Shown one piece after another: positions 41,248-64,000 of a stretch of DNA of 64,000 bases; position 1 is the first letter of the stretch, and each line of letters starts with the position of its first letter. The translations under genes and the position numbers were made by a program. The notes beneath the pieces were generated by a model that was given only the letters and a program-made list of their open reading frames with translations, was not told the origin of the DNA and ran no database searches. Source of the stretch: Selaginella moellendorffii (Eukaryota > Plantae > Lycopodiophyta); NCBI RefSeq assembly GCF_000143415.4, contig NW_003314300.1, positions 1,595,014 through 1,659,013 of the forward strand. The letters are read 5' to 3'.

Positions 41248-41315
41248 TTGTCGGGGAAGAATCTTGGTTCTCAGGGAAATTTTTTCCTAGGGTTCTTTGT
41301 CTCGCCCTCTCTCCG

Positions 41316-42809: not shown

Positions 42810-42844
42810 TAAGACAAAACTTTTATTTCTGAAATGTCGTAGCC

Positions 42845-43492: not shown

Positions 43493-44164
43493 GATTGAAT
43501 CGGACTAATATGAAGAAGAAGAAGCTTGTGGATGGAGGGATTTGATCGTTTGATGGAGATTTATACTCTGGGTGTCGTGTTGTTTCAGCCCAGGAGAGCC
43601 TTCTTGGATTTTTCATGCTGTAGAATCCGCGTGAATTTTCTCTTCTTATACAGTTATATCGTGAAGAACAAGCTTACGAGTTCTGAACAGAAACATAGAA
43701 AGTATAGAGAAAGAAACCCAAGCTTGACAAAAGATAATGTTTGTAACGTGGAAAGAAAATTGTGTCATCTTTCGAAGAACAAGTTACGTAGAGAGAAAGA
43801 AACCAAACTTGATAAAAACGTGGAAAGAAAATGATGTCTTCCTCTCTTTTTTTTTTAAACACAGAAAATCTAGAATATAAAGTTGGACTTGTTGTTGGCC
43901 TGCACTAACACCACCATTATATAGTATCAAAACTTGCCATAAACACAACCAAAGCTTCAAGTGGATTTTATCTTTGATTAAGTGTGTAAAATTTTCTGAA
44001 AAAGCTTGATGCTGGTTCTCATAATGTAGTTAGACAATGAAATCGCTCATCTTAAGTGGCGATTCATCTATGCAGCAGCTTGAAACAAAGAATTGGTGTC
44101 AGTTCGCGTTTGGCGCCAAACTTCGAATTTTTAAAATTTTAAATCTAGGTCTAGCGGCCGCTCC

Positions 44165-44520
44165 TGTTGCTAAAGTGATTGACTTCCCTCATGGTTATAG
44201 TTCGTCCCACCATCTTGGACGTTCTTGAGGATCCTTAGCTGCGGTCCTTGTTCCACCGCTACCGTCCATCGTCTCACATCCACTGTCACCAAGTCATGCC
44301 CCCAGAGCATGGTCCCGGGGTGGCCAAGATCCTCCAAGTGGACATAAACTTGCGCCCAGCAGAAGAACCTCACTTCCCGGCAATGCAAAAAGCACGCACC
44401 ACGAGACTAGATTTTCGTCCGGCATTAACAAGAATTTGGTCGCCACGTCTTGATCATACATACCACATCCTTGGCGCGAATGTCGATTTTGCTGCCTTTT
44501 TAGTTTTGGCCGAAGGACAA
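44165..44520 (-). pseudogene. Collapsed PPR-DYW remnant
   Basis: Fragments matching EAAK, SLVVHA, VRFF, AQVYVHL.DLG, EQGPQLRILKN and ITMR of the 47356 gene family, with large deletions. Confidence 0.6.
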
Positions 44521-45039
44521 AAATTCAAAGGCTCATCTCATTTTTCTTAATGATTTTCAATTTTCAATCAGCTTTTACCCCAGCAATTGGAGATGCTTCT
44601 CAAAGTTGGCCCATTTCTCTTGTTTCTTTTTAAACTCCTCCACGTAAATCTGCTGCAAGAAGGGCGTACAGAACTCATCCTTGCCTGTCGATGCTAAAGT
44701 CGCCCACAATCTCCAGATCCCTTATTAACAGCCTCGCAGCATAGAAAAGCCCAATGGTCTACAAAAGTGGAAATGACTGAATCCCAGTCTTCCTTGGTGT
44801 CTAACAGCTTGCCCACTTCCTTCGGCGTCAAGTCGGGCAATTCGTCATTGATGGCGCGCTCCGAGGTGGACGTATAACTGTACAAGAAGAGACAAATTCA
44901 CGCGGATTCTACAGCATGAAAAACCCAAGAAGGCTCTCCTGGGCTGAAACAACACGACACCCAGAGTATAAATCTCCATCAAACGATCAAATCCCTCCAT
45001 CCACAAGCTTCTTCTTCTTCATATTAGTCCGATTCAATC

Positions 45040-45687
45040 ATGGCTACATCCATTCTCGTGCAATTGGCGATGGTGGCACTCGCAGCAGTCATCCTTCCTT
45101 GCCACTCCGCCGATCCCGATCCCCTCCAGGACTACTGCGTCGCCGATCTCACCCTCAACCTCACCATCAACGGCTATCCATGCAAGGACTACTACGCCGC
45201 CACCATCGACGACTTCGTTTTCAGCCTCGCCACGCCCGCCAACACAAGCAACGCTTACGGAGCCGACAGCTTCCCAGGCATCGTGCAAACGTTCCCGGGT
45301 CTCAACACCCTCGGCTTCGCAATCCTACGCCTCGACTTCGCGGTGGGAGGCCTCATTCCTCCACACACGCACCCCCTCGCGTCCGAGCTCGTCTACGTCG
45401 AGGAGGGGAGCTTGTACGCCGGCTTTGTGACCCAGGACAACAGGCTCTTCGCCAAAATCCTCAACAAGGGCGATGTTTTGGTGATCCCCCGGGCGCTCAT
45501 TCACTGGCAGCTCAATGTGGGCGACACTCCGGCCAAGGCCATCGCCACCCTCAACTCGCAGCAGAACCCTGGAGCGCAGCTTATCGCGAGTTCCATGTTC
45601 GGATCTGGGATTAGAGACGACGTGCTGGCCAAAACTTTCTTCCTTGACGAGTCCATTGTCCGCCAACTTAAGTCGCAGTTTTCTTAA
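45040..45687 (+). CDS. Germin-like protein (type A), protein identical to the 42845 copy
   Basis: Same 215-aa translation; TATA (TATAAA) at ~44967. Confidence 0.95.
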   Translation: MATSILVQLAMVALAAVILPCHSADPDPLQDYCVADLTLNLTINGYPCKDYYAATIDDFVFSLATPANTSNAYGADSFPGIVQTFPGLNTLGFAILRLDFAVGGLIPPHTHPLASELVYVEEGSLYAGFVTQDNRLFAKILNKGDVLVIPRALIHWQLNVGDTPAKAIATLNSQQNPGAQLIASSMFGSGIRDDVLAKTFFLDESIVRQLKSQFS

Positions 45688-45777
45688 GGCTACGACATTT
45701 CAGAAATAAAAGTTTTGTCTTGAATTATGAAAGTTTGCATGAGATTAGCGCTAAAGTTGCCAAAAGGTTGACTAAGT

Positions 45778-47273
45778 TTACGAGTAAACATGGGTGAGAA
45801 TGGGCATTTTTTTCTGCGGGTGCCTACAAATCGGGCATTCCTTCTTCGCCCCCCATACCGCTGGTAAGCATTCCTCGCAAACGTACGAGTGGCCGCAACC
45901 ATAGAGACCTCGCCGCAACGAGAACTTCTCCATGCAGATGATACAGTTCTCGTTCTTGGCGTTCTTCTCGTCCGATTTGATCGACTGGGCGAGCTCCTCC
46001 TTTTTCCGCAGCTGCTCCTCCAGCAGTTGCTTCTCCTTTGCCTGCTTCTGCTGGGCGAGCTGGAAATTCCAAGGAGAAGATGAAAGAAGAATGAGGGAAG
46101 GAAAGCAATGAGACTTGCGATACTTACTTGCAAGCGCTCCTCGTTGTAGCGCGTTCTGAGTGCCATCATCCTCCTGTGCTGCTCTTCCTTGAGCGCCGCG
46201 AGCCTTTCTCCTATTTTCATCTGAAGGCCTTGCTCGCTGAGAAGCCTCTCAAACTTCCTGAGATCAATCAAAGAAAAGGTAAAAAAACAGAGCATAAGTA
46301 TCCTCGACAGAGAATGAAAACTTACTGGAGCTCCTTGTTGCGAGAGTCTATGTTTTGCCGCAGAGATTTTTCCTCCCTCTGGTATTTGGCGATCTCCGCG
46401 TCGGTCTCCTCACGCTTTTTCTTCAGGCTCTCAAAGAGCTCCTCGTTTTCTCGGCGGCAGCTCCGGAGCACCATCTCCCGCTGGGCCTCGAGCTGTGATC
46501 TTCGCTTCTTCATCTGGAAAACGAAACACAAGATCAAAAAAACGAGAGCCCATCGAAATCCTACCTCACGCTCATGTGCCTCCTTGATTTCTCTTCGGAG
46601 GCGTTTCTCCTTCTCCATTTCTTCCTTCTTTCTCGCCAGCTCTTGCTGCAAAAGCGCTGCCTTTTGGCTGTCGTTGTGGAGCGCGCTCTCGGCAGCGTCA
46701 TTCTCTTGCTGGAGTTGGATCTGGAGCTGCTTCGCGCGCTCATACTCCTACAACAACAGCGCAAAAGAAAAAAACTTGAGACAGAGGAAGATCACGAAAG
46801 AAAGAAAGAAAGAAAGAAGAAAGCTTCTATCGCACCTGGAGTGCCTCCCTCCGAGGCCTCAAAACTTTCTCCTCGAGGCTCTCGATCGTCCAGTTCCGGA
46901 GTGCTTTCTTCTTTGAATCCAGGCGCTTCATATCCTCTGGAGTAGCGAGGTATCCATAGAGTTGCCCATTCCTCCTGGACTCGCGACGAGGAGCGAACGC
47001 ATCATGGACTCTCACGGCATTCTCATACCCGATCTCGGTGCTCGGAAAGACCAAGAACGCGCGGCTAGTCTGGCCCTCGTAGTTGTACAAGGGAATCAAA
47101 CGCCGATCCTCGACCTTGATCACCTCTTCGATCGCTGCGCGAATTTCTCTGTTCTCCATACCTCTGTGCTTCCTGAGCTCCCGATCGTATGTCGTGGCCA
47201 CATTCTCGATCACGACCACGGGCGGCCAAGGGATTTTCCTGTCGCGCTCTCCGATCGGCGGAAGATCTCCCAT
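45778..47273 (-). CDS. XS-domain + coiled-coil + C-terminal RING-HC protein, ~406 aa, 5 exons (47273-46836, 46747-46565, 46513-46326, 46257-46128, 46059-45778)
   Basis: All introns GT-AG and phase-consistent. XS-like IPWPPVVVIEN..GMEN.EI..YNYEG....LVFPSTEIGYENAVRVH..QLYGYLAT.EDM; long E/K/R coil; CIIC-x12-CGH-x3-CEEC-x10-CPIC. Confidence 0.82.
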
Positions 47274-47355
47274 CGGAGAGAGGGCGAGACAAAGAACCCT
47301 AGCAAAAAATTTCCCTCTTTCTTGAGAACCAAAAATTAGGAATCTTCCATGGCGG

Positions 47356-49626
47356 ATGACTGCTGCGATCGCAGGGCTAGAGGAGCGGCATTTCCTGGCG
47401 GATCTCGTGAGGGGTGCTGGCCGTGGCAAGGATCTCCTCCAGGCCCGGCGATTGCACGCCAGATTCTTCCCCGACACGAGTGCCGCCAAGGATATTTTCT
47501 TCGCGAATCTCCTCATCCAGATGTATGGGCGCTGCGGCAGCGCTGCGGACGCGCGATCACTCTTCGACGCCATGGATCGCCGAAATTTCTACTCCTGGAA
47601 CATGATGATCCAGGCCAGCCGCGCCGCCGGGCACACCTCCAGCGCCGCCGAGCTCTTCGATCGCATCCCCCAGCGCGACGCCGCGACCTGGAACGTGATG
47701 ATCCACGCATACGCGGCACAGGGGTCGATCGACGCCGCGGCTCGGCTCTTCGATCGAATGCCCCATCGCGACGTGTGTTCTTGCAACGCACTGGTGATCG
47801 CATTTGCCAGGGAGGGGAATATCGGGCGATCCAAGAGCCTCTTCGATCGAATGCCGCAGTGGAATCTCGTGTCCTGCAACGCGGTCGTGCAATCCTACAT
47901 CCGGAGCTCCAATCTCGGCCAGGCGAAGAAGATCTTCGATTCCATGCCGGATCACGACGTGGTCTCTTGGAACTCTCTCATCACACTCTATGCCCAGTCC
48001 GGGCATCTTGAGCTTGCCAAGAACACGTTTGATGGGATGGAGTTCCGCGATCTTGTCTCGTGGAACGCGATGATCGCCGCGTATGTGGCGGCATCCCGGA
48101 TTCGCGACTGCCAGGCTATGTTCGATCGCGTCCCAGAGCGCCAGGCCGTGACGTGGAACTCGATGATCACAGCGCTCGCGCACCAGGGCCAAATCGAGGC
48201 AGCAAAATGGATCTTTGATCGAATGCCGGCCAAGGATCTCGTGTCGTGGACGAATCTACTGCTGTGCTACGCGCAGAATGGATTCCTGGAGGAATCGGAC
48301 AGGGCGTTCCATCGTCTCCCCTTCACCAACGCAGTGGCACGAACGACGATGATCTTGGTGAATGCTCAAAGAGGGGATTTGGCCACCGCGAGAGAGATCT
48401 TTGATACCATGCCGGATCAGGACGTGGTGGCGTGGACGGCGATGGTGCAAGCTTACGGTCACCAAGGCTTCGTCGCCCTCGCGAAGAACATCTTCGATCG
48501 AATCCCGGAGAAGAATCCAGTCTCGTGGAGCGTGATGCTCCTCGCGTATGCCGAGAATGGGCACTTCGACGAGGCCGTGAGGTTCTTCCACGAGATCCCG
48601 CGCAAGACCATCGTCTGCTGGACAGCTCTCACGCAAGTTTACGTCAACTTGGGTGATCTCGGCGCCGCCAGGAGCGTGTTTGAGAGCATGAAGATGCGCA
48701 GCTTGGTTTCCTGGACGACCATGGTGTGGGCTTACGCTCAAAACGGGCACTACGATCAAGCAGTGGAGGTCTTCCAGCTTATGAATCTCGAGGGCGTCAA
48801 GCCGGACGAGGTGACGTTCCGGAGCGTTCTAACTTCGTGCAGCCATGTCGGTCTCGTGGCCGAGGGCTGGGAACACTTCGTCTCGATCAGCCAAGACTTT
48901 GGGATGGTCCCGAGGAGAGAGCACTACTGCTGCATGATCGACATCCTGGGTCGATCCGGAAGAACTCTAAGCGCCGAGGAGCTCGTCAACTGGATGCCAT
49001 TTCTTCCGGACGTGGTGATATGGATGTCGCTGCTGGGAGCTTGTCGCCTCCACCGCCATGCCGACTGTGCTGAGAGAGTCGCAGCGAAGATCTTCGAGCT
49101 GGAGCCCGGCTACACGACTGCCTACGTCGTTCTCTCGAACATGTACTCTTCGATCGGGAGGAGGGACAAGGTATCGATGATCCGGAACCTGATGAAGTCG
49201 AGGCGAGTGAGAAAAGTTCCGGGGATCAGCAACATCGAAGTTGGCAATGAAGTTCACAGTTTCGTGGTGGGGGATCTTTCGCATCCTCGCAGTGAAGACA
49301 TCGTCGCGGAGCTCCAGAGACTGGCGAGAGAAATGCGAGACGCTGGCTACGTTCCCGACACGAAGGAGATCTTGCACGACGTTGGCGAGGAGCAAAAGGA
49401 GGAGCTGCTGCACTACCACAGCGAGAAAATGGCTGTGGCTTTTGGATTGATTAGCACGGAGCAAGGGTCGCCGCTGAGGATCCTCAAGAACCTGCGGGTG
49501 TGCGGGGATTGCCACTCGGCTATCAAGTTTGTGTCCAAGATGGTGGGACGATCTATAACCGTGAGAGACGCTAGCCGGTTCCATCACTTTAGCAACGGGA
49601 CGTGCTCTTGCGGAGATTACTGGTGA
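47356..49626 (+). CDS. PLS-E-DYW pentatricopeptide repeat protein (organellar C-to-U editing factor)
   Basis: Intronless 756 aa; PPR repeats, PG box (KVPGISNIEV), HSEK, CGDCH, C-terminal CSCGDYW. Confidence 0.96.
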   Translation: MTAAIAGLEERHFLADLVRGAGRGKDLLQARRLHARFFPDTSAAKDIFFANLLIQMYGRCGSAADARSLFDAMDRRNFYSWNMMIQASRAAGHTSSAAELFDRIPQRDAATWNVMIHAYAAQGSIDAAARLFDRMPHRDVCSCNALVIAFAREGNIGRSKSLFDRMPQWNLVSCNAVVQSYIRSSNLGQAKKIFDSMPDHDVVSWNSLITLYAQSGHLELAKNTFDGMEFRDLVSWNAMIAAYVAASRIRDCQAMFDRVPERQAVTWNSMITALAHQGQIEAAKWIFDRMPAKDLVSWTNLLLCYAQNGFLEESDRAFHRLPFTNAVARTTMILVNAQRGDLATAREIFDTMPDQDVVAWTAMVQAYGHQGFVALAKNIFDRIPEKNPVSWSVMLLAYAENGHFDEAVRFFHEIPRKTIVCWTALTQVYVNLGDLGAARSVFESMKMRSLVSWTTMVWAYAQNGHYDQAVEVFQLMNLEGVKPDEVTFRSVLTSCSHVGLVAEGWEHFVSISQDFGMVPRREHYCCMIDILGRSGRTLSAEELVNWMPFLPDVVIWMSLLGACRLHRHADCAERVAAKIFELEPGYTTAYVVLSNMYSSIGRRDKVSMIRNLMKSRRVRKVPGISNIEVGNEVHSFVVGDLSHPRSEDIVAELQRLAREMRDAGYVPDTKEILHDVGEEQKEELLHYHSEKMAVAFGLISTEQGSPLRILKNLRVCGDCHSAIKFVSKMVGRSITVRDASRFHHFSNGTCSCGDYW

Positions 49627-49814: not shown

Positions 49815-50468
49815 TTATACAAAGTTGGATCGGACTTGGTTGATGCTACGCTCGTCCAAGAAGAAAGTCTTCTCGAGCACCTCGTCCGGCACCTCTGGTC
49901 GGGATCCAAACATGGATCTCGCAATGAACTGGATTCCGGGGAGCTGGGAGTTGAGAGTGGCGATGATCTTCGCGTTGGTCCTTCCTACGTTCATCTGCCA
50001 GTGGATTAATCCGCGAGGAATCACCATGACTTCTCCCCTGTTCATCACTCGGGCAAACAGGCGATTGTCCGCTGTGACGATGGCGGCGTACACGGTCCCT
50101 TCTTCTACGTAGACCATCTCCGAGGCTCTGGGATGGGTGTGAGGAGGGATGATCCCTTCCGGGAGAAAGTCGAGCCTAGCGATGGAGAGACCCAAAGTGT
50201 TGAGGCCTGGAAATCTCAGCACGGTTCCAAAGATCGCACCGGAGCGATTGATGTTTGTGGTGTTGGAGGAGTTGACGATTCCGCTGTAGATGAAATCGTC
50301 CACCGTGACTGTGGACGAGTTCCTGCATGGGAATCCATTGATCCCAGGGACGACGTTGAGATCTCCGATGCAAAAGTCCTGGAGTGGATCTGGATCGGAT
50401 GAAACTACTGCGCACACGAAGAATGCGAGCAAAGCAATCCAGACAGCGTGAGATTTGGAGAGAGCCAT
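49815..50468 (-). CDS. Germin-like protein type B (copy 1)
   Basis: 217 aa from MALSKSH; DPDPLQDFC, PPHTHPRASE, IHWQ. Confidence 0.95.
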   Translation of the reverse strand: MALSKSHAVWIALLAFFVCAVVSSDPDPLQDFCIGDLNVVPGINGFPCRNSSTVTVDDFIYSGIVNSSNTTNINRSGAIFGTVLRFPGLNTLGLSIARLDFLPEGIIPPHTHPRASEMVYVEEGTVYAAIVTADNRLFARVMNRGEVMVIPRGLIHWQMNVGRTNAKIIATLNSQLPGIQFIARSMFGSRPEVPDEVLEKTFFLDERSINQVRSNFV

Positions 50469-50899: not shown

Positions 50900-51760
50900 A
50901 ATCATCAATGACTAATTTTTATCCAGTGGAAGTTGTTACGTATCCAATATGTTGCTCCGAACCTCCAATGTTCATACGTGCGGATAATACCAGCGACACC
51001 ACAAGCAAGCAGGTGACCCGACCACAGCGAGCTTTTCCCAACGGACGAGTCCCGGGAGGTACTGGGGATCCACCTGTACAGGGGGACTGTATACGTAATG
51101 TGCTTGTACAATACGACCACGACGTTCGAGCTCATGCAGTTGAGCTCTGGAAGGACAGTTTGGGAGATGGTGGACTCACATCTTTTGTGTTACAAGGGGT
51201 TTGAGACATGGATGGCGAGATGTACTACACGGAGTCGGGAGATCGCCGGGATAGTTGAACGAGTACAAAAGTTCAAGGCAGTGAGCCGCTGTTTCTCCTA
51301 TGACATCAGGAAGACACTCGGTGGCGCTGGAGAAGATCCAATCCTTGCAATGAAATTCTTCTTTTCCTTGGCTGTCTACCACCAACCTCTAGGACTCATT
51401 CTCACTCAAGCTGATGGTAAGGCAGTCCGTGACGGTATCTGGTGTGAGATCGAGGCTGCCGCCAAGACTCGGATCAGCCACCAGCTCCCATGGTATCCTC
51501 CACTTTTGGCCGTCATGCCAGAGCATGAACACTTCTTACACTTTCCTCATGCTTGTGCTGACTCGCCAATTGCATCGATATCTTGCAACAACAACACATA
51601 AGCTGAAGAGAGCGTGACGGAGTCGTACCTGGATAATCTCTAATTAGGATTTCTGAGCCGAAGCAGCAAGGAATGGATGGTATTACTTACTGCCTGAAGG
51701 GTCGAATGCCTCGTTGGCAGAAGTTTTGCAAGGCATTGATGCTGCTCCAAAAGAAGAAGA
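50900..51760 (+). pseudogene. Interrupted ORF remnant of unknown, possibly F-box-associated, family
   Basis: Adjacent coding-like frames (102 and 167 aa) broken by a frameshift and stops; no recognisable motif. Confidence 0.3.
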
Positions 51761-52054: not shown

Positions 52055-52708
52055 TCATACGAAGTTGGATCTGACTTGGTTGATGCTACGCTCATCCAAG
52101 AAGAAAGTCTTCTCGAGCACCTCATCCGGCACCTCTGGTCGGGATCCAAACATGGATCTCGCAATGAACTGGATTCCGGGAAGCTGGGAGTTGAGAGTGG
52201 CGATGATCTTCGCGTTGGTCCTTCCTACGTTCATCTGCCAGTGGATTAATCCACGAGGAATCACCATGACTTCTCCCCTGTTCATCACTCGGGCAAACAG
52301 GCGATTGTCCGCTGTGACGATGGCGGCGTAGACTGTCCCTTCTTCTACATAGACCATCTCCGAGGCTCTGGGATGGGTGTGTGGAGGGATGATCCCTTCC
52401 GGGAGAAAGTCGAGCCTAGCGATGGAGAGACCCAAAGTGTTGAGGCCTGGGAATCTCAGCACGGTTCCAAAGATTGCGCCGGAGCGATTGATGTTTGTGG
52501 TGTTGGAGGAGTTGACGATTCCATTGTAGATGAAATCGTCCACCGTGACTGTGGACGTGTTCCTGCACGGGAATCCATTGATCCCGGGGACGACGTTGAG
52601 ATCTCCGATGCAAAAGTCCTGGAGTGGATCTGGATCGGATGAAACTACTGCGCACACGAAGAATGCGAGCAAAGCAATTGAGACAGCATGAGATTTGGAG
52701 AGAGCCAT
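52055..52708 (-). CDS. Germin-like protein type B (copy 2)
   Basis: 217 aa, germin boxes intact. Confidence 0.95.
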   Translation of the reverse strand: MALSKSHAVSIALLAFFVCAVVSSDPDPLQDFCIGDLNVVPGINGFPCRNTSTVTVDDFIYNGIVNSSNTTNINRSGAIFGTVLRFPGLNTLGLSIARLDFLPEGIIPPHTHPRASEMVYVEEGTVYAAIVTADNRLFARVMNRGEVMVIPRGLIHWQMNVGRTNAKIIATLNSQLPGIQFIARSMFGSRPEVPDEVLEKTFFLDERSINQVRSNFV

Positions 52709-53444
52709 AGTCGAAGAACTGGATGAAATCTTTGATTGGAGACGAGTGGATCGCTGGATTTGTGATGAAGAACCATTGCCTTGAATGATATATATACCTC
52801 GAAAATGTGATAGTACGTGGATGCTCCGCGTACACACTAATTTGGAACGACGAGTCAACGGCCGCCCCTGGAACGCGAAGTTTGAATCACATTTTAGGTC
52901 AAAGGTCAATATAAGTACACTCATTTTGAGTAACGGTATTTTACCAAAAATAAAAATAGAATTTTGGAAACCTCTGCCAAAAAATGGTAGCTTTTCAATC
53001 AAAAGAGAAAGGTTTAACGTGGTTACCTCCGCCAATCCTTACAATCGAAACCTTCTTTTTTTCATACTTTTCTGTTGCGCAGGGCTCTGTAAATTTAGGT
53101 GTTGTTGTTCATGCACCGGTTCTTCCTTCGTGGATCGCATTTTAACACTCTCGTGAGCTCCAACAGTCTGTATATTTTCTGTACTTCGATTCTTGTTGCT
53201 CACTGTTTTTTTTTTATCCCAAACTGCTCGACATTCGCTGGAAGGTACGAGCTGAAGGCATTGTGCACGTAAGATTCAGGTTTTCCTCATTCTGATTCTA
53301 CTCCTGACTTGTATGCATTTTAGAACATACAACTTGGAATGTAGACATAAACACAATCTCATCTTCTTTCGTTGGCATTGGTTCACTTGTAAGTCAGATG
53401 CACAGGTCTTCACTCTGTAGATAATTTTTTGGTCGTTTTCTCAG

Positions 53445-54695
53445 GGACGTCGTTAAAAGAGCACCCTAGATGAGTTCCCGAGAACAAGTCAGCTGTTGCA
53501 TTTGGTGATGTCTTGGGACTTACTTGGAAAGAATTTGGGAACACGAGGTAAGTGGATGCATGCTTTTAAAAGCGACTGAAACCAGCACAGTTGTTGTACA
53601 ACCAAACGAGCGGAATAGTTCTGGCTGGAGAAATATCTTCACGAGCGGAATAGTTCTGGCTGGAGAAATATCTTCACGAGCGAAATAGTTCTGGCTGGAG
53701 AAATATCTTCACGAGCTGTATCTTTTTTCTCTGTTCGTTGATGTTTTGTTCCTTGACTTTGCGTCAGTCACGGTGCCAGTATGATTCGTCGAACGCTAAC
53801 TGAACTTTATTCTGAAGCGCATCTCTCTTCCAATGGAACGTTCGGTGTGAGTGCAATCTTTGTTTGGATATATGCTTCGTCCACTTATAGTTATGTTTTT
53901 CTCTTTTCTTTGTTTCGCAGTGATGGGCATCTTGTCGCAGTTGCCTACTACAGATCAGGCTACGGATGATCCTTCCGAGCTGGTATATGTCAGTCATTCG
54001 TGGCTATTTCTTTATTTTCGTTTTGTTTCGCTACAAGGGATGGCACGCGAGATTGCTGCTCGAGCGTTATAAAATGTCCATGGATCTCATACCACTTAGC
54101 TGGAACCAAAAAAGTGCAACAAGAGCTTGCCAAGCCGAATGTATTAGAAAGGTACTGCCATCCTTTGTTTTCAGGTTTGTTCAAGACAAGAAAAACGCCG
54201 CGGAGATCATTCGTGAGTTCTTTGCGGGGCTGTGGGGCCTCAATGAAGAGAGTTACGAGATCATCAACAAACAGCCCGAGCTATGTGTTCTAAAACCTCA
54301 ATGCGAAGGTGGTGGTGAGTTTTGTCTTTCCAAGTTTCTCTCATCGTTTTCGCTTCTCACAGGAAACACCATCTATGGCAGCGCCGTGAAAGCGAAGCAG
54401 ACGGAGGAGCCGGGCTTTCGGCTTATATCCTCATGCAGCGCATCTTCCCATCGACGTACATGTCTTATCTCGTGCGAGGAGGAGCGGAGCGCCGAGAAAG
54501 CAGTCTCGGAGGGAGCTGGGAATCTTTAGCACATACCTGTTTCTTCTTTTTTCCTCTCTCAATTTTTTACAGATTCTTTGCAGGAATGGCGAAAGAGAAA
54601 TCACCAACAAGGATTGTGGTTACTTGCTGAGAACAAAAGCCTCGAAAGTAGATGAGTCGCCACTGGCTTCGCTGTTCTTGACAGCGTCTATCTCT
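53445..54695 (+). pseudogene. Glutathione synthetase (eukaryotic GSS/GSH2) pseudogene, C-terminal part with introns
   Basis: [98 protein letters not shown], with frameshifts. Confidence 0.85.
53606..53716 (+). repeat. 35-bp tandem triplication inside the GSS pseudogene
   Basis: ACGAGCGGAATAGTTCTGGCTGGAGAAATATCTTC x3 plus ACGAGC; single copy in the paralogous pseudogene. Confidence 0.9.
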
Positions 54696-54930
54696 TTCTG
54701 GAAATAAACAAGTGAAAAACTTAAGGGTAAATGATAATTCTAATGGATATGGGTCATTATCTATTTATATGAGGCACTTTGTTTATGCTTGTAAATGCAT
54801 CTTTTGCGCGCATTTATCAGCGAGGTGATAGCTCTTGGCCAAGAGCTATTTTCTAGCGATGGTCTTGGCTATTTTCTTGCAACGACAAACTTGGATAGAT
54901 TTCGAGAGAAGAATTTTTATAAACAAAATG

Positions 54931-55584
54931 TCATACGAAGTTGGATCGGACTTGGTCGATGCCACGCTCGTCCAAGAAGAAAGTCTTCTCGAGCACCTCG
55001 TTCGGGACCTCTGGCCGAGATCCAAACATGGATCTCGCAATGAACTGGATTCCGGGAAGCTGGGAGTTGAGAGTGGCGATGATCTTCGCGTTGGTCCTTC
55101 CTACGTTCATCTGCCAGTGGATTAATCCGCGAGGAATCACCATGACTTCTCCCCTGTTCATCACTCGGGCAAACAAGCGATTGTCCGCTGTGACGATGGC
55201 GGCGTAGACTGTCCCTTCTTCTACATAGACCATCTCCGAGGCTCTGGGATGGGTGTGTGGGGGGATGATCCCTTCCGGGAGAAAGTCGAGCCTAGCGATG
55301 GAGAGACCCAAAGTGTTGAGGCCTGGAAATCTCAGCACGGTTCCAAAGATTGCGCCGGAGCGATTGATGTTTGTGGTGTTGGAGGAATTGACAATTCCGC
55401 TGTAGATGAAATCGTCCACCGTGACTGCGGACGAGTTCCTGCATGGAAATCCATTGATCCCGGGGACGACGTTGAGATCTCCGATGCAAAAGTCCTGGAG
55501 TGGATCTGGATCGGATGAAACTACTGCGCACACGAAGAATGCAAGCAAAGCAATCGAGACAGCGTGAGATTTGGAGAGAGCCAT
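54931..55584 (-). CDS. Germin-like protein type B (copy 3)
   Basis: 217 aa, germin boxes intact. Confidence 0.95.
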   Translation of the reverse strand: MALSKSHAVSIALLAFFVCAVVSSDPDPLQDFCIGDLNVVPGINGFPCRNSSAVTVDDFIYSGIVNSSNTTNINRSGAIFGTVLRFPGLNTLGLSIARLDFLPEGIIPPHTHPRASEMVYVEEGTVYAAIVTADNRLFARVMNRGEVMVIPRGLIHWQMNVGRTNAKIIATLNSQLPGIQFIARSMFGSRPEVPNEVLEKTFFLDERGIDQVRSNFV

Positions 55585-55964
55585 AGTCGAAGAACTGGAT
55601 GAAATCTTTGATGATGAAGAGCCACTACCTTGAATAATTATATACCTCGAAAATGTGATAGTACTTAGATGCTTCGCGTACACACTAATTTGGAAAGCCG
55701 AGTGAGCCGGCCGCCCCCTTAGCCGCCATCTGGAACGCGAAGTTTGAAATACTTTTTTGGTCAAAGGTTACAAGTCTCCTAACTCTCTAAACATGTTTGG
55801 AATTTTGGAAATTAAGCAGCTTTTGTTCTACTCCTACTCCATTGAGAAGGAGTGTATATACATTGCAGATCAAATTCCTTCACCAAAAAATGGTGAGAAA
55901 GCGCAACTCTTCAAGAAGTGAAATTAGAAATTTATCATTTACCCTTAAGTTTTTCACTTGTTTA

Positions 55965-57105
55965 TTTAGAGATAGACGCTGCCAAGCGGTGTCGACGCTT
56001 CCCTCATCTACTTTCGAGGCTTTTGTTCTCAGCAAGTAGCCACAATCCTTGTTGGCGATTTGTCTTTCGTCATTCCTTGCAAGAAATTGAGAGAGGAGAA
56101 AAAAAGAGACAAGGTATGTGCTAAAGATTCCCAGCTCCAAGACTGCCGCTCGCCTCCTCGCACGAGATAAGACGTGTAGGTCGGTGGGAAGATGCGCTGC
56201 ATGACGATATAAACCGAAAGCCCGGCTCCTCCGTCTCCCAGTAGCTTCGCTTTCACGGCGCTGCCATATTTGTTGTTCCTGTGAGACGCGAAAACGATGA
56301 GAGAAACTTGGAAAGGCAAACCTCACCACCGCCCTTCGCATTGAGGGTTTAGAACAAATAGCTCTAGCTGTTTGTTGCTGATCTCGTAACTCTCTTCGTT
56401 GAGACCCCACAGCCCCGCAAAGAACTCACGAATGATCTCCGCGGCGTTTTTCTTGTCTTGAACAAACCTTGGAGTGCTGAAAACAAAGGATGGCAGTACC
56501 TTTCTAATACATTTGGCTTGCCAAGCTCTTGTTGCACTTTTTTGGTTCCAGCCAAGTGGTATGAGATCCATGGACATTTTATAACGCTCCAGCAGCAATC
56601 TCGCGTGCCATTCCTTGTAGCGAAACAAAACGAAAAAAAAAAAAAAAGCCACGAATGACTGACATATACCAGCTCGGAAGGATCATCCGTGGGTTCGTAG
56701 CCTGATCTGTAGTAGGCAACTGCGACAAGATGCCCATCACTGCGAAACAAAAGAAAAGGATCCAAACAACGATTGCACTCACACAGAAAGCGTTCCATTG
56801 GAAGAGAGATACGCTTCAGATTAAAGTTCAGTTAGCGTTCGACGAATCATGCTGGCACCGTGAGTGACGCAAAGTCAAGGAACAAAACATCACCGAACAG
56901 AGAAAATAGATACAGCTCGTGAAGATATTTCTCCAGCCAGAACTGATCATACATATTTGGTTGTACAACAAAGAGCACAGCTGTGCTGGATTCAGTAGCT
57001 TTTAAAAGACCTCGTGTTCCCAAATTCTTTCCAAGCAAGTCCCAAGACATCACCAAATGCAACAGGGACGTCGTTAAAAGAGTTGAGCATTTCCCGAGAA
57101 CATGA
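55965..57105 (-). pseudogene. Second glutathione synthetase pseudogene, inverted
   Basis: Same motifs as 53445-54695 on the minus strand (YYRSGYEPTDDPSE, KVQQELGKP, GYLLRTKASKVDEG), with different lesions. Confidence 0.85.
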
Positions 57106-57360
57106 GAAAAATTATCTACAACTATGAAACACGCAACAGAAAAGTATGAAAAAAAGAGAGGTTTTGATGAAAGGATTTGCGGAGGTAACCACGCCCAGCA
57201 TGAGTTTGAACCCTCTTAGTGGTATCCATTCAACGCAGACTTTTTCTGTGAGATCTGTGAAGTTAGCGAAGGAACCTTTCTCTCTGTTGATTGGTCACTA
57301 TCTATGTGTGCGATGATCTTGGCTATTTTCAGAAAAGAATTTTATAAACGGGGCAAAATC

Positions 57361-58014
57361 TCATACGAAGTTGGATCGGACTTGGTTGATGCCACGCTCA
57401 TCCAAGAAAAAAGTCTTCTCGAGCACCTCGTCGGGAACCTCTGGCCGAGATCCAAACATGGATCTTGCAATGAACTGGATTCCGGGAAGCTGGGAGTTGA
57501 GAGTGGCGATGATCTTCGCGTTGGTCCTTCCTACGTTCATCTGCCAGTGGATTAATCCGCGAGGAATCACCATGACTTCTCCCCTGTTCATCACTCGGGC
57601 AAACAGGCGATTGTCCGCGGTGACGATGGCGGCGTAGACGGTCCCTTCTTCTACGTAGACCATCTCCGATGCTCTGGGATGGGTGTGTGGGGGGATGATT
57701 CCTTCCGGGAGAAAGTCGAGCCTAGCGATGGAGAGACCCAAAGTGTTGAGGCCTGGAAATCTCAGCACGGTTCCGAAGATGGCGCCAGAGCGATTGATGT
57801 TTGTGGTGTTGGAGGAGTTGACGATCCCGCTGTAGATGAAATCGTCCACAGTAACTGTGGAGGAGTTCGTGCACGGGAATCCATTGATCCCGGGGACAAT
57901 GTTGAGATCTCCGATGCAAAAGTCCTGGAGTGGATCTGGATCGGATGAAACGACTGCGCACACGAAGAATGCGAGCAAAGAAATCGAGAGGGCGTGAGAA
58001 GTGGAGAAAGCCAT
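57361..58014 (-). CDS. Germin-like protein type B (copy 4)
   Basis: 217 aa from MAFSTSH; germin boxes intact. Confidence 0.95.
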   Translation of the reverse strand: MAFSTSHALSISLLAFFVCAVVSSDPDPLQDFCIGDLNIVPGINGFPCTNSSTVTVDDFIYSGIVNSSNTTNINRSGAIFGTVLRFPGLNTLGLSIARLDFLPEGIIPPHTHPRASEMVYVEEGTVYAAIVTADNRLFARVMNRGEVMVIPRGLIHWQMNVGRTNAKIIATLNSQLPGIQFIARSMFGSRPEVPDEVLEKTFFLDERGINQVRSNFV

Positions 58015-58279
58015 ATCCAATCCCAGATCGAGGAAAGAGGAAAAACTCGATATTAAGCTCTCGGAGATGAATGTACTACTGGATTTGTGACGAGAAATCA
58101 TTCCCTTGAATGATATATATATACTAGGAATTGCGACGCTACATGCATACACACGGAAGAATTTGAAAGCGAGTGAGCCACCATAATGGAACACCATCAG
58201 ATTTAAGGTCAACGAGAAAAGTCAAAGCTGTCGATCTCATTGCAAGGAAAGGGCCACGGGTTTTCGCTGGAAATTTTGG

Positions 58280-58650
58280 GCTCCAGTAATCTCCACTCCC
58301 ATTGCTAAAGTGATGGACTTCCCTCCCACCATCTTGGACGTTCTTGAGGAACCTCAGCTGCGGTCCTTGTTCCACCGCCATGGTATCTATCGCCTCTGTC
58401 ACCAAGCCATGCCCCCAAATCATGCTCCTGGGGCAGCCAAGATCATCCAAGTGGACATAAACATAAACTTTCGTCCAGTAGAAGAACCTCACTGCCTCGT
58501 CGAAATGCTCCCGGCAATGCAAAAAGCATGCACCACGAGACTCGATTTCTGTCCGGTGTTACAGGCAAGGGCAACAAGAATGGTCACCACAACGTCTTGG
58601 TCATGCCTTGGCCCGAATGTCGATTTTGCTGCCTTTTTTGTTTTGGCAGA
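58280..58650 (-). pseudogene. Collapsed PPR-DYW remnant upstream of GLP copy 4
   Basis: HFDEAVRFF...EQGPQLRFLKN...HHFSNGSGDYW; duplicated at ~61745-62115 (+). Confidence 0.65.
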
Positions 58651-58699
58651 AGGAAAAAAACTCGTCTCATTTTTCCGATGATTTTCAATTTTCAATCTT

Positions 58700-59692
58700 C
58701 AATGTCTACCCCGGCAATTGGAGATGCTTCTCCAAGTTGGTCCCAAGATTATCATTTCTCTTGTTTCTTTAATTCCTCCACGTAAATCTGCTGCAAGAAG
58801 GTTGTACGCATATCTCGAATCCACTTGCCTGTCGATGCTAAAGTCGCCCACAATCTCCAGATCCCTTATTAACAGCCTCACAGCATAAAAAAGCCCATTG
58901 GTCTACAAAAGTGGAAATGACTGAATCCCAGTCTTCCTTTGTGTCTAACAGCTTGCCAACTTCCTTCGACGTCAAGTCGCGCGATTCAGGCCAGCGTCCG
59001 GCATGGGATCCACATCTATAAGATCCCACAGTTTCGCAGTAGCAACTTCTATGCAGACCCTGTCTAGGATATTCAGCGAGTGCGGATGGTTGGCTGCACA
59101 ATACTCCACTTGTTGACGTCTACACGGGTCATCATCTACAACGGCAGCTAGAACCGAAGCCTGCTTGCACTTGTTCCTGCAAATGCAAACATCACAACCT
59201 ATTAGTGACATGCAGGCATGCATGCAAGTGAAGCGACCACAAACCTTGGTGAAACCTTCTGTTCGAAAGACTTTGATCCTGTAGTTGTCCGCCCTTCCGT
59301 ATTTCCTGTAGTGCATAGCATCAGACAACATCCCTAAGATCACCTTGTAGCTACAGAGAACATCCATTATCGACTCGTAAGCTTGGAGGCGCTCCTTGGC
59401 ATCATACCTCCACTTCACTGGGTCCAATCCCTCAACACCATCGACAATGAATGATATCCTCGCCCAGACCCATCCGATCCTCCAGAAAAGCCTTGAGTGA
59501 AGCGAGATCCCTTACAGTGTCGGCCGTGACGTTGGGCTGCTCGGCGTACGCAAGCTTGAGCGCATCAACAAATAAATCAATGAGGCAACTGCTAGCTCGT
59601 TCCATGTTCCATAAGCACAGCACTATGGTCTTCTTCGGAGCTGCAGTGCAAAGGAGAGAGGCAAATGCCCTGAGCCTTGCAAGACTTGCCAT
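58700..59692 (-). pseudogene. Frameshifted gene of unknown family
   Basis: ATG 59692; coding-like frames with a GT-AG intron (~59242-59176) and frameshifts; 3' part also present at ~44540-44840 and ~61223-61700. Confidence 0.45.
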
Positions 59693-60130
59693 CGCCCTTG
59701 GGCCCGACTACCAGTATCTCCTCTCCGGGAAGCATATCAAACCACATCAGAGCATCGGGCAAGCCTACCACGTTGATTGCTTTCCTGGCCTAGGACCCGG
59801 ATCCAAAGTAGGAACTTTGTTTACCTTGTGGACATCGATCAGCTTCCAGGTGGCAGCAGTAACTGATAGTGTATTATTCAATACACTATCCTTAGTCAAT
59901 GTTTGACTTTCTCCACCTTGACCAAAAATGTGATTCATCGGTTCCAGTATGGTGGCTCACTCGGCTTTCAAATTCTTCCCACTCTCACGAGGAGTGTGTA
60001 CGCGCAGCATCCAAGTAGCATCACATTTTCTAGGTATATATATCATTCAAGGCAATCGTTATTCATCACATCCATCGATCCACTCGTCGCAAAGATTCAT
60101 CCAGTAGTTCTTCCCTCTTGATCATCAACT

Positions 60131-60784
60131 ATGGCTCTCTCCAAATCTCACGCTGTCTCGATTGCTTTGCTCGCATTCTTCGTGTGCGCAGTAGTTTCAT
60201 CCGATCCAGATCCACTCCAGGACTTTTGCATCGGAGATTTCAACGTCGTCCCCGGGATCAATGGATTCCCGTGCAGGAACACGTCCACAGTCACGGTGGA
60301 CGATTTCATCTACAGCGGAATCGTCAACTCCTCCAACACCACAAACATCAATCGCTCCGGTGCAATCTTTGGAACCGTGCTGAGATTCCCAGGCCTCAAC
60401 ACTTTGGGTCTCTCCATCGCTAGGCTCGACTTTCTCCCGGAAGGGATCATCCCTCCACACACCCATCCCAGAGCATCGGAGATGGTCTACGTAGAAGAAG
60501 GGACCGTGTACGCCGCCATCGTCACAGCGGACAATCGCCTGTTTGCCCGAGTGATGAACAGGGGAGAAGTCATGGTGATTCCTCGCGGATTAATCCACTG
60601 GCAGATGAACGTAGGAAGGACCAACGCGAAGATCATCGCCACTCTCAACTCCCAGCTTCCCGGAATCCAGTTCATTGCAAGATCCATGTTTGGATCTCGG
60701 CCAGAGGTTCCCGACGAGGTGCTCGAGAAGACTTTTTTCTTGGATGAGCGTGGCATCAACCAAGTCCGATCCAACTTCGTATGA
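60131..60784 (+). CDS. Germin-like protein type B (copy 5, chimeric: 3' end from copy 4)
   Basis: 217 aa ORF; 3' coding end and downstream flank match the reverse complement of copy 4. Confidence 0.95.
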   Translation: MALSKSHAVSIALLAFFVCAVVSSDPDPLQDFCIGDFNVVPGINGFPCRNTSTVTVDDFIYSGIVNSSNTTNINRSGAIFGTVLRFPGLNTLGLSIARLDFLPEGIIPPHTHPRASEMVYVEEGTVYAAIVTADNRLFARVMNRGEVMVIPRGLIHWQMNVGRTNAKIIATLNSQLPGIQFIARSMFGSRPEVPDEVLEKTFFLDERGINQVRSNFV

Positions 60785-62380
60785 GATTTTGCCCCGTTTA
60801 TAAAATTCTTTTCTGAAAATAGCCAAGATCATCGCACACATAGATAGTGACCAATCAACAGAGAGAAAGGTTCCTTAGCTAACTTCACAGATCTCACAGA
60901 AAAAGTCTGCGTTGAATGGATACCACTAAGAGGGTTCAAACTCATGCTGGGCGTGGTTACCTCCGCAAATCCTTTCATCAAAACCTCTCTTTTTTTCATA
61001 CTTTTCTGTTGCGTGTTTCATAGTTGTAGATAATTTTTCTCATGTTCTCGGGAAATGCTCAACTCTTTTAACGACGTCCCTGTTGCATTTGGTGATGTCT
61101 TGGGACTTGCTTGGAAAGAATTTGGGAACACGAGGTCTTTTAAAAGCTACTGAATCCAGCACAGCTGTGCTCTTTGTTGTACAACCAAATATGTATGATC
61201 AGTTCTGGCTGGAGAAATATATAAGTGCAAGCAGGCTTCGGTTCTAGCTGCCGTTGTAGATGATGACCCGTGTAGACGTCAACAAGTGGAGTATTGTGCA
61301 GCCAACCATCCGCACTCGCTGAATATCCTAGACAGGGTCTGCATAGAAGTTGCTACTGCGAAACTGTGGGATCTTATAGATGTGGATCCCATGCCGGACG
61401 CTGGCCTGAATCGCGCGACTTGACGTCGAAGGAAGTTGGCAAGCTGTTAGACACAAAGGAAGACTGGGATTCAGTCATTTCCACTTTTGTAGACCAATGG
61501 GCTTTTTTATGCTGTGAGGCTGTTAATAAGGGATCTGGAGATTGTGGGCGACTTTAGCATCGACAGGCAAGTGGATTCGAGATATGCGTACAACCTTCTT
61601 GCAGCAGATTTACGTGGAGGAATTAAAGAAACAAGAGAAATGATAATCTTGGGACCAACTTGGAGAAGCATCTCCAATTGCCGGGGTAGACATTGAAGAT
61701 TGAAAATTGAAAATCATCGGAAAAATGAGACGAGTTTTTTTCCTTCTGCCAAAACAAAAAAGGCAGCAAAATCGACATTCGGGCCAAGGCATGACCAAGA
61801 CGTTGTGGTGACCATTCTTGTTGCCCTTGCCTGTAACACCGGACAGAAATCGAGTCTCGTGGTGCATGCTTTTTGCATTGCCGGGAGCATTTCGACGAGG
61901 CAGTGAGGTTCTTCTACTGGACGAAAGTTTATGTTTATGTCCACTTGGATGATCTTGGCTGCCCCAGGAGCATGATTTGGGGGCATGGCTTGGTGACAGA
62001 GGCGATAGATACCATGGCGGTGGAACAAGGACCGCAGCTGAGGTTCCTCAAGAACGTCCAAGATGGTGGGAGGGAAGTCCATCACTTTAGCAATGGGAGT
62101 GGAGATTACTGGAGCCCAAAATTTCCAGCGAAAACCCGTGGCCCTTTCCTTGCAATGAGATCGACAGCTTTGACTTTTCTCGTTGACCTTAAATCTGATG
62201 GTGTTCCATTATGGTGGCTCACTCGCTTTCAAATTCTTCCGTGTGTATGCATGTAGCGTCGCAATTCCTAGTATATATATATCATTCAAGGGAATGATTT
62301 CTCGTCACAAATCCAGTAGTACATTCATCTCCGAGAGCTTAATATCGAGTTTTTCCTCTTTCCTCGATCTGGGATTGGAT
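60785..62380 (+). repeat. Inverted, circularly permuted duplicate of the flanks of GLP copy 4 (57360->56925 joined to 59172->58015)
   Basis: Near-identical reverse complement; novel junction GGAGAAATAT-AT-AAGTGCAAGC at 61211-61232. Confidence 0.9.
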
Positions 62381-63034
62381 ATGGCTTTCTCCACTTCTCA
62401 CGCCCTCTCGATTTCTTTGCTCGCATTCTTCGTGTGCGCAGTCGTTTCATCCGATCCAGATCCACTCCAGGACTTTTGCATCGGAGATCTCAACATTGTC
62501 CCCGGGATCAATGGATTCCCGTGCACGAACTCCTCCACAGTTACTGTGGACGATTTCATCTACAGCGGGATCGTCAACTCCTCCAACACCACAAACATCA
62601 ATCGCTCTGGCGCCATCTTCGGAACCGTGCTGAGATTTCCAGGCCTCAACACTTTGGGTCTCTCCATCGCTAGGCTCGACTTTCTCCCGGAAGGAATCAT
62701 CCCCCCACACACGCATCCCAGAGCCTCGGAGATGGTCTATGTAGAAGAAGGGACCGTCTACGCCGCCATCGTCACCGCGGACAATCGCCTGTTTGCCCGA
62801 GTGATGAACAGGGGAGAAGTCATGGTGATTCCTCGCGGATTAATCCACTGGCAGATGAACGTAGGAAGGACCAACGCGAAGATCATCGCCACTCTCAACT
62901 CCCAGCTCCCCGGAATCCAGTTCATTGCAAGATCCATGTTTGGATCCCGCCCAGAGGTACCGGACGAGGTGCTCGAGAAGACTTTCTTCTTGGACGAGCG
63001 TAGCATTGACCAAGTCCGATCTAACTTTGTTTGA
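62381..63034 (+). CDS. Germin-like protein type B (copy 6, chimeric: 5' end from copy 4)
   Basis: 217 aa from MAFSTSH; unique 3' end (ERSIDQV) and unique downstream flank. Confidence 0.95.
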   Translation: MAFSTSHALSISLLAFFVCAVVSSDPDPLQDFCIGDLNIVPGINGFPCTNSSTVTVDDFIYSGIVNSSNTTNINRSGAIFGTVLRFPGLNTLGLSIARLDFLPEGIIPPHTHPRASEMVYVEEGTVYAAIVTADNRLFARVMNRGEVMVIPRGLIHWQMNVGRTNAKIIATLNSQLPGIQFIARSMFGSRPEVPDEVLEKTFFLDERSIDQVRSNFV

Positions 63035-63594
63035 GATTTTATAAAACCTTGAGCAAGAACTTTTTTCGTACGGAATAGTTAGTTGATAATATTAGTTTAG
63101 GGTTTAAGAACCTTTAACTAAACCCTTAAAGGAAGGCTGGAAAAGGAATGGTGCAGTGTTGGGAACCACACGAATATCGCAGCAAACTGCCAAGAACAAA
63201 CAAAGACAAAAAGAAGAAAAAAATTTCGAGATTTGCGGCAATGTGTGGGGGAGATAAGCTGGGGATGGATTTTTTAATGATTTACGAACCTTTGAGAGAT
63301 TGGATTGGAATCAATCAATCACACGAGAACTCCTTCTCTTATCATTTTTCTTTCCTTGGGCCGATTTTTTTGCCTTTGTTTCGTGTACTTGTTTATCCCC
63401 TTATCGGAGTGTTCCCAGCCAGTGCGCGAGACGACGGCGATGGCGAAGAAATAGAAAGAAAATCGCGCAAACAAGAAGAAGAACAAGAAGCTCCACTCAC
63501 GAGGTAATATAAAAAGAGGTTTTTTTCAATCGCGAGTCTATGGATCGATGAGCGAGCCAGAAGAAATCGAGAAAGAAAAGGAGGGAATCGATTG

Positions 63595-64000
63595 ATGAAG
63601 GCCTCCAAAAATCCTAGTGGAGGAGGAGGAGGAGGAGGAGCTCTCCTCCAAGAACTAGAAGCTCTGAGCCAAGCTCTGTACAAAGCCCAGATCGTCCAGG
63701 CGCCCACCACGAATCCAGCGCCAAGACGCGAATTTGATCAGATGGGTCACCGCCGGAGAGTGAGCGAGGCAGTGGGTCGTCCCCAGAAAGCTCCGCCCAA
63801 TCCCTCCGCGCTGGAATCCAGGCACTCCATCTCCGACATTGGCCGCAAGAACACCACCGGTGATAAAGAACTGGACGAATCGTTAGCAGAGGAGGAAGAG
63901 ATCGACGCGGCGAGGCTGGCCGGCGGGGGGAATCAAAAGAAAGGCTTCTGGAATTGGAAGCCACTCCGCGCGCTCTCACACATCGGCCAGCAGCGATTCC
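63595..64000 (+). CDS. PMI1/PMIR-family (plastid movement impaired, NT-C2) protein, 5' part, runs off the window
   Basis: MKASKNPSGGGGGGGALLQELEALSQALY...KKGFWNWKPLRALSHIGQQRF, open to the end of the window. Confidence 0.85.
   Translation, partial: MKASKNPSGGGGGGGALLQELEALSQALYKAQIVQAPTTNPAPRREFDQMGHRRRVSEAVGRPQKAPPNPSALESRHSISDIGRKNTTGDKELDESLAEEEEIDAARLAGGGNQKKGFWNWKPLRALSHIGQQRF

Follow-up and report, generated by a model that had tools for sequence, protein, structure and literature searches.

In a 64,000-nucleotide stretch of the Selaginella moellendorffii genome (contig NW_003314300.1, positions 1,595,014 to 1,659,013 of the forward strand; hereafter the window, from whose first letter all coordinates are counted), a 2248-bp unit containing the germin-like protein (GLP) gene GLP4 reappears inverted and in rotated order, and its copy ends in two intact chimeric genes, GLP5 and GLP6. 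Whichever route was taken, it is very probable that the GLP4 unit was duplicated, that its ends were end-joined head to tail, and that a homologous exchange took place inside the coding region of a resident GLP gene, here called R. A first-pass annotation of this DNA had described such a duplication and had called for an alignment of GLP4, GLP5, GLP6, and their flanks; this alignment was carried out here and agrees with the annotation on both the geometry and the chimeras.

The GLP4 unit recurs as an inverted, permuted copy

The source unit (56925-59172) consists of GLP4, an intact open reading frame (ORF) on the minus strand (57364-58014; 57361..58014 with the stop codon; Cupin_1 E ~1e-39), together with 1157 bp of upstream sequence that includes the promoter region (U; 58016..59172, minus strand) and 430 bp of downstream sequence (D; 56925..57354, minus strand), the outer ends of D and U, at 56925 and 59172, being the two breakpoints. 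In plus-strand order the copy reads GLP5-D-AT-U-GLP6, which amounts to one and a bit turns of the unit; written out, it is 58015..56925, then AT, then 59172..57355 on the opposite strand, with a single joint uniting the two ends of the source. The copy of the 3' flank (D'; 60791..61220, plus strand) is identical to D at 429/430 positions and the copy of the 5' flank (U'; 61223..62379, plus strand), which now lies upstream of GLP6, is identical to U at 1157/1157 positions. Between D' and U' is the sole new joint at 61220/61223, ...GGAGAAATAT[AT]AAGTGCAAG..., which is blunt, carries a 2-bp AT filler (61221..61222), and is without microhomology. The starts of GLP5 (60131) and GLP6 (62381) are 2250 bp apart, i.e. 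2248 + 2. The inverted and permuted recurrence reported in the first-pass annotation is, therefore, confirmed to the base by the repeat alignment, as are the novel junction with its filler and the spacing of the two gene starts.

Outside the genes, copy and source are almost undiverged. Segment 57355-59172 is the reverse complement of 61223-63040 over 1818 nt with 16 mismatches (99.1% identity), all confined to the 3' end of the gene (GLP4 coding positions 333-651); segment 56925-58015 is the reverse complement of 60130-61220 over 1091 nt with 26 mismatches, of which one is at 57268 in D and 25 are at coding positions 7-324, 378, and 396. Copy-derived sequence differs from the source at 1/2184 bases (0.05%), every other difference sits in gene parts inherited from the resident gene, and the arms share perfectly identical stretches of 1490 bp and 694 bp.

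Because these identical stretches are at least as long as a Sanger read, the pairing of the arms depends on mate pairs, which are also the only means by which a Sanger assembly separates the assembled form from the isomer with a flipped spacer. Moreover, the S. moellendorffii assembly is a mixture of two haplotypes, in which allelic cDNAs differ by 7-9 bp each (PMC3095285). We considered on these grounds that the permuted copy, or its order and orientation, might be an artefact of misassembled near-identical repeats. This is improbable: the window contains no N bases, and single reads could span the D|U joint and each of the two chimeric genes, all of which are unique in sequence. A misplaced second haplotype was likewise judged unlikely because the 0.05% that separates copy and source is far below allelic divergence, the copy being at least 10 times closer to its source than alleles are to each other (PMC3095285).

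Two further explanations for the unit were tried and rejected. Mobilization by a transposon was discarded because no terminal inverted or direct repeats were found at the ends of the duplicated unit, no tRNA genes were found, and the ORFs of U and of M, the spacer between U and GLP5 (59173..60130), contain no Pfam domains; the only repeat is an internal one in U (58293-58987, 78% similar to 44158-44843). A chance adjacency of two independent conversions or duplications was discarded because the two tracts end 2 bp apart at 61220/61223 while their far ends are both ends of one contiguous source. The D|U joint was not found in metagenome contigs, which is expected and uninformative.

GLP5 and GLP6 are reciprocal chimeras

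GLP5 (60131-60781; 60131..60784 with the stop codon) and GLP6 (62381-63031; 62381..63034 with the stop codon) are both on the plus strand, and like GLP1-4 they encode intact 217-aa proteins. PF00190 spans residues 68-207 of GLP4, GLP5, and GLP6 with E values of 7e-40 to 1e-39, the Cupin_1 domain was found in the proteins of GLP1-6, and both germin boxes with the His/His/Glu and His metal ligands are present in 6/6 translations (...PPHTHPRASEMVYVEEG... and ...GEVMVIPRGLIHWQMN...). The closest named proteins are S. moellendorffii germin-like proteins, and the window GLPs are exact members of a 22-member cluster of such proteins (1,708,524-bp scaffold).

GLP5 retains ~230 bp of upstream region of the type found at GLP1-3 (59902-60130, 79-86% identical to GLP1-3), which is the only part of M that is not single copy, as well as a GLP1-3-like 5' coding half, and is followed by a GLP4-type 3' part. 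Conversely, GLP6 begins with a GLP4-type 5' part and retains a private 3' coding end; homology to GLP4 ceases 6 bp past its stop codon and gives way to a single-copy 3' flank (F; 63041..64000), which has no second match within the window. Flank and coding alignments thus bear out the earlier description of GLP5 as having its own promoter and the GLP4 3' end, and of GLP6 as having the GLP4 5' end and its own 3' flank. We infer from these alignments that the 5' half of GLP5 and the 3' half of GLP6 are the two halves of R, and that R would have been arranged head to head with GLP4, at a distance of ~1 kb from U.

The coding mosaic is highly ordered. Among GLP4, GLP5, and GLP6, 41 coding sites are informative and fall into four runs, in the order 23 sites at which GLP4 equals GLP6, 3 at which GLP4 equals GLP5 (333, 345, and 360), 2 at which GLP4 equals GLP6 (378 and 396), and 13 at which GLP4 equals GLP5. 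Four runs or fewer were obtained in 0/200000 shuffles of site order. GLP4 has no private sites, and GLP5 and GLP6 nowhere differ from it together. Accordingly, GLP5 has resident-type sites at 7-324 and at 378 and 396, GLP6 is identical to GLP4 at coding positions 1-332 and 361-527 and of resident type within 333-360 and 528-651, and the three genes do not differ at positions 397-527. The direct repeats are, therefore, reciprocal chimeras with a period of 2250 bp, as a single ends-in crossover predicts, but with three switch points rather than one. The patch in the middle of the gene would be explained by a single crossover together with one short conversion of GLP4, over 19-167 bp if GLP6 was the donor and over 28-53 bp if GLP5 was; possible alternatives are three crossovers or patchy repair of mismatches where the exchange took place. 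The first-pass annotation had read the patchwork as reciprocal. The switch of SNP type in mid-gene stands, but it is weaker as evidence than had been suggested since a single conversion tract into GLP4 suffices; because both comparisons are made against GLP4, the reciprocity of the patch adds nothing independent in favor of a reciprocal event. A repair model with one break, worked out on paper, was rejected as an explanation for the patch because it cannot produce the 23/3/2/13 order without further conversion.

The GLP4 unit as the source

By themselves, the coding sites are symmetric with respect to the direction of copying, in that GLP4 could equally be the parent of both chimeras or a recombinant of GLP6 (5') and GLP5 (3'). 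In the latter case, an old GLP5-D-U-GLP6 pair would have existed, recombination between GLP5 and GLP6 would have popped out a circle (GLP6 5' plus GLP5 3'), and this circle, cut at D|U, would have been end-joined between M and L, the sequence that borders D at 56924|56925, to give rise to GLP4. The flanks of GLP5, which are GLP1-3-like on both sides, would agree with this polarity, as would the fact that, of the 18 of 22 cluster members viewed, none from a second, 970,821-bp scaffold (see below) was a GLP4-type protein.

Direction is decided by an older paralog of the D/L region. The spacer between GLP2 and GLP3 contains an inverted paralog of 55923-57193 (53018..54744, minus strand) with 80-92% identity, and this paralog is colinear with its counterpart across 56924|56925. 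In it, the boundary sequence ...GCTCGTGAAG|ATATTTCTCC... is unbroken and present in three copies, as part of a 35-bp minisatellite (53606-53716; 3.2 copies, 98% identity) the unit of which includes the sequence that is broken at 56924|56925. Moreover, the 18-mer at the end of D occurs five times in the window and is followed by AT and U only at 61220; elsewhere, L-type sequence follows. Because the older paralog is colinear across 56924|56925, D beside L is the ancestral arrangement and D beside U the derived one, and on this alignment the GLP4 unit is evidently the source and the D|U joint new. The source is thus in its ancestral context at the left boundary, while the right boundary (59172|59173) has no paralog for comparison. 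We rejected the reverse polarity on this basis and regard it as scarcely credible. The direction originally proposed, from the GLP4 unit into a resident inverted GLP, is borne out.

Several routes lead to the assembled structure

Common to all routes is what the sequence shows: the ends of the GLP4 unit were end-joined head to tail, and the unit interacted by homology with R within the coding region. The following steps are very probable whichever route was taken. The 2248-bp unit would have been duplicated and the end of D joined to the start of U with the AT filler. The head-to-tail joint now lies inside the former single gene R, which would have been in opposite orientation ~1 kb beyond U, and homologous exchange within the 0.66-kb coding region would have split R in two. 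GLP5 would then consist of the R promoter, the R 5' half, the GLP4 3' half, and D, and GLP6 of U, the GLP4 5' half, the R 3' half, and the R flank; both chimeras are in frame, with their promoters swapped.

We compared two specific routes using a script that built an inferred ancestor (L-S-M-R-F) and ran both on this same ancestor. In route (a), the unit was circularized with AT and underwent one crossover with R; in route (b), a tandem duplication with AT was followed by an exchange of the second GLP4 copy with R and by an exchange between the U arms. The products of the two routes were identical to each other and differed from the window at 4/8416 positions, i.e. 60877 (the partner of 57268) and the patch sites 62713, 62725, and 62740. 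Turning the spacer 59173-61222 around in the assembled sequence gives the intermediate of route (b). Because the arms on either side of this spacer are perfectly identical over 1490 bp, the assembled form is one easy flip away from a tandem duplication plus one inversion. Because the modeled products are identical, the sequence cannot separate a free circle from a chromosomal head-to-tail duplication; tandem-duplication and repair-copying routes stand beside the circle, given that a tandem duplication with two inverted-repeat exchanges arrives at the same product. Thus, the alternative named in the first-pass annotation, a tandem duplication followed by two GLP-mediated inversions, is workable.

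We tentatively favor, with limited confidence, a route that began with an ordinary tandem duplication of the GLP4 unit in the chromosome, by which the joint was made, and continued with two inverted exchanges. The second GLP4 copy would have exchanged with the inverted paralog R, thereby inverting the DNA between them, and in a last step the near-perfect inverted arms of 1.5-1.8 kb would have flipped the 2-kb spacer into the assembled orientation, which should be easy for arms that match perfectly over 1490 bp; the mid-gene patch would be the trace of a single short gene conversion (19-167 bp) among GLP4, GLP5, and GLP6. Several observations are in line with this sequence of events: GLP1-4 form a tandem array, the locus contains other inverted blocks (53018-54744 versus 55923-57193, and a palindrome of 40-48.8 kb), and mosaic GLP proteins encoded on the 970,821-bp scaffold show frequent exchange between paralogs. 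In addition, chromosomal partners would have many generations in which to exchange and a circle only a few cell cycles, and a circle would be expected to find its own source, with 2.25 kb of perfectly matching sequence, sooner than R, which offers 0.66 kb at 92% identity. Three points weigh against this route. First, the slight preference for it rests on priors, and the sequence favors neither it nor the circle. Second, it requires three events with unseen intermediates. Third, the difference between copy and source of 1/2184 is below the allelic divergence of the assembly (7-9 bp per cDNA; PMC3095285), and near-identity of this degree leaves little time for the successive steps unless the arms were homogenized by conversion.

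A free circle is possible but doubtful. Here, the GLP4 unit or its copy would have been circularized by end joining with AT, and the resulting 2250-bp circle would have integrated into the inverted resident GLP by one Campbell-type (ends-in) crossover. This model predicts every feature in only two steps: a period of 2250 (2248 + 2) with one non-homologous joint, reciprocal chimeras with zero sites at which both differ from GLP4, and an intact source locus. There are also precedents of permuted duplicates that have been ascribed to circles (PMC3245284, PMC7450558, and PMC7188851, and cattle KIT as described in PMC3420103). The circle itself is, however, deduced from the sequence and none was observed, and its product is the same as that of the tandem route. 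Since the source is still in place, a circle would have to come from copying, a sister chromatid, or the homolog, and the best partner for its recombination would be the 2.25-kb source that it came from rather than a 92% identical paralog. Vascular plants seldom integrate extrachromosomal DNA through homology, and no plant germ-line case of this kind was found in the literature searched. The first-pass annotation had taken the locus as what a circle integrating into a resident GLP by single crossover predicts; geometry, joint, chimeras, and direction are exactly as predicted, but they are not diagnostic. Nor can inverse PCR reveal a circle without exonuclease treatment, as the chromosomal D|U joint amplifies likewise.

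Copying in a single repair event is a less likely explanation. A break or stalled fork in R would have led both ends to invade GLP4 and copy outward through D and U, after which the extended ends would have been end-joined with AT; in a variant, a replication fork would have switched templates with one non-homologous jump from 56925 to 59172. A single event of this type would give the same structure with an untouched donor and without a crossover, and it would fit the blunt filler joint as well as the near-zero divergence. Plant break repair is known to include ectopic copying that is completed by end joining. Yet, the extended ends would normally anneal through R sequence and yield a plain gene conversion, and no specific precedent was found in the literature. 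A single break point, moreover, cannot yield the 23/3/2/13 order without extra conversion, which applies equally to the other routes.

A probable second haplotype carries related proteins

A scaffold of 970,821 bp encodes close relatives of window proteins, including a 98% match to a distant GLP pair of the window (described below), and is probably the allelic region; SELMODRAFT_123975 and SELMODRAFT_123769 are also encoded on it. Its protein P0027 has the GLP5 combination of T51 with G208/N210 and differs from GLP5 by 2 aa. The mature part of a second protein, P0028 (XP_002986433.2), is identical to GLP6 (I39, T49, S208, and D210). That GLP5-like and GLP6-like proteins are annotated on a different scaffold counts against an assembly artefact. 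No unsplit R-type or GLP4-type protein of this scaffold was among the 18 of 22 cluster members viewed. The permuted structure may, therefore, be shared by both haplotypes; if so, the arms would owe their near-identity to conversion between the inverted repeats and not to a very recent origin.

P0028 is modeled with a first exon that bears no relation to U. In the window, this exon is matched best (63% aa identity) at 50967-51162, upstream of GLP1, and a region search with it gave no match. Either the haplotypes differ in structure here or a further GLP lies outside the window. We also note that the RefSeq model of GLP6 (P0002) starts in an ORF inside U' (62014-62199, plus strand) and splices in after the signal peptide, this first exon being a prediction; the same ORF is found upstream of GLP4 (58196-58381, minus strand) and is part of a repeat seen also at 44191-44262. 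Another protein of the 970,821-bp scaffold, P0001 (SELMODRAFT_123878), is a mosaic GLP that combines a GLP4-type signal peptide (F3, L9, and S12) with GLP1-3-type residues at 39, 49, and 208, showing that exchange between paralogs is common in the GLP family.

The surrounding GLP array

The window contains six intact GLP genes of 217 aa each. GLP1 (49818-50468), GLP2 (52058-52708), and GLP3 (54934-55584), all on the minus strand, form a tandem array with GLP4 in which the genes are spaced 2.2-2.9 kb apart. GLP3 is bracketed by the inverted repeat of ~1.3-1.7 kb (53018-54744 versus 55923-57193, 80-92%), i.e. the spacer block is inverted between otherwise co-oriented tandem genes; this block also carries pieces of a glutathione synthetase pseudogene (ORF 53966-54529, PF03917, E 1.2e-8). 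At lower coordinates lies a large palindrome (40001-48804) with arms at 40001-43658 and 44873-48804 of 91-95% identity and a spacer of ~1.2 kb. The palindrome carries the distant GLP pair in head-to-head arrangement (42851-43492, minus strand; 45040-45681, plus strand), with 54% aa identity to GLP1-6, and its spacer holds the 78% copy of part of U at 44158-44843.

Comparison with known systems

In the literature searched, no paper described this locus, and few reported the re-integration of circles in a plant germ line. In Campbell-type (ends-in) integration, e.g. of integrative plasmids in yeast or moss, a circular molecule enters by one crossover. The locus shares with this system an insert that lies between direct repeats consisting of reciprocal donor/target chimeras, with a period equal to the length of the circle; the Campbell-type cases are, however, experimental and involve perfect homology, while here a free molecule would be a deduced intermediate. 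Flip-flop of inverted repeats and arm-to-arm conversion are known from human Y palindromes and the FLNA-EMD inversion. Like these, the locus has inverted arms (1.8 kb, 99.1% identity, 1490 bp perfect) around a 2-kb spacer, an identity above the allelic level, and a conversion-like patch, but its arms are much shorter, and both flipping and conversion are putative. With plant GLP clusters in general, it has in common six intact 217-aa cupin genes 2.2-2.9 kb apart and mosaic sequence; unlike in those clusters, GLP5 and GLP6 did not come from simple unequal crossing-over but combine a head-to-tail joint of the GLP4 unit with reciprocal chimeras in opposite orientation.

Cattle KIT colour-sidedness has been explained by serial translocation via circular intermediates, with homologous recombination as the presumed means of return to the home locus (Durkin 2012 Nature, as described in PMC3420103). 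As in this account of KIT, in which a circle is thought to re-enter a homologous site and create a duplication, the copy is permuted relative to its source. By that same account, the KIT events are interchromosomal, involve hundreds of kb, and are backed by population and phenotype data, whereas the event described here involves 2.25 kb and is local, with a 92% identical inverted paralog as its target; it also differs in that the exchange lies within a coding region and resulted in two intact chimeric genes, and in that alternatives without a circle remain. Permuted duplicates have, moreover, been ascribed to circular DNA for tilapia vasa (PMC3245284) and human segmental duplications (PMC7450558, PMC7188851), with short insertions or 1-2-bp microhomology at the joints. 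The diagnostic arrangement is the same: a source A-B is found again as B-A, and a single joint connects what were its two ends. In those cases, the circle was opened at a random point and end-joined at an unrelated site, while here the "opening point" is a homologous exchange in a paralogous gene. PMC7188851 also cautions that nearby duplicates within gene families may originate from nested duplications.

Implications

Permuted duplicates are the main argument available from sequence for extrachromosomal circles feeding back into genomes. The locus is a very clean new example of this known type of event, being small, almost undiverged, and base-exact, with a polarity that can be proven via an older paralog; it is distinctive in its small size, in its homologous rather than end-joined entry, in its inverted paralogous target, and in its two intact, promoter-swapped chimeras. 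It also shows a limit of the argument. With an inverted paralog next door as the target, tandem duplication plus inverted-repeat exchanges lead to the identical sequence, and permutation alone should, therefore, not be scored as evidence for circles within gene clusters.

If a circle were involved, this would be a case of circle-mediated gene birth in a plant, in the germ line of a lycophyte, by homology rather than end joining, and one crossover into a 92% identical inverted paralog would have made two intact, promoter-swapped chimeric genes in one step. The functional outcome is two complete hybrid genes, one of which inherited a different promoter. In germin-like gene arrays, exchange between paralogs thus yields new combinations of coding sequences and promoters.

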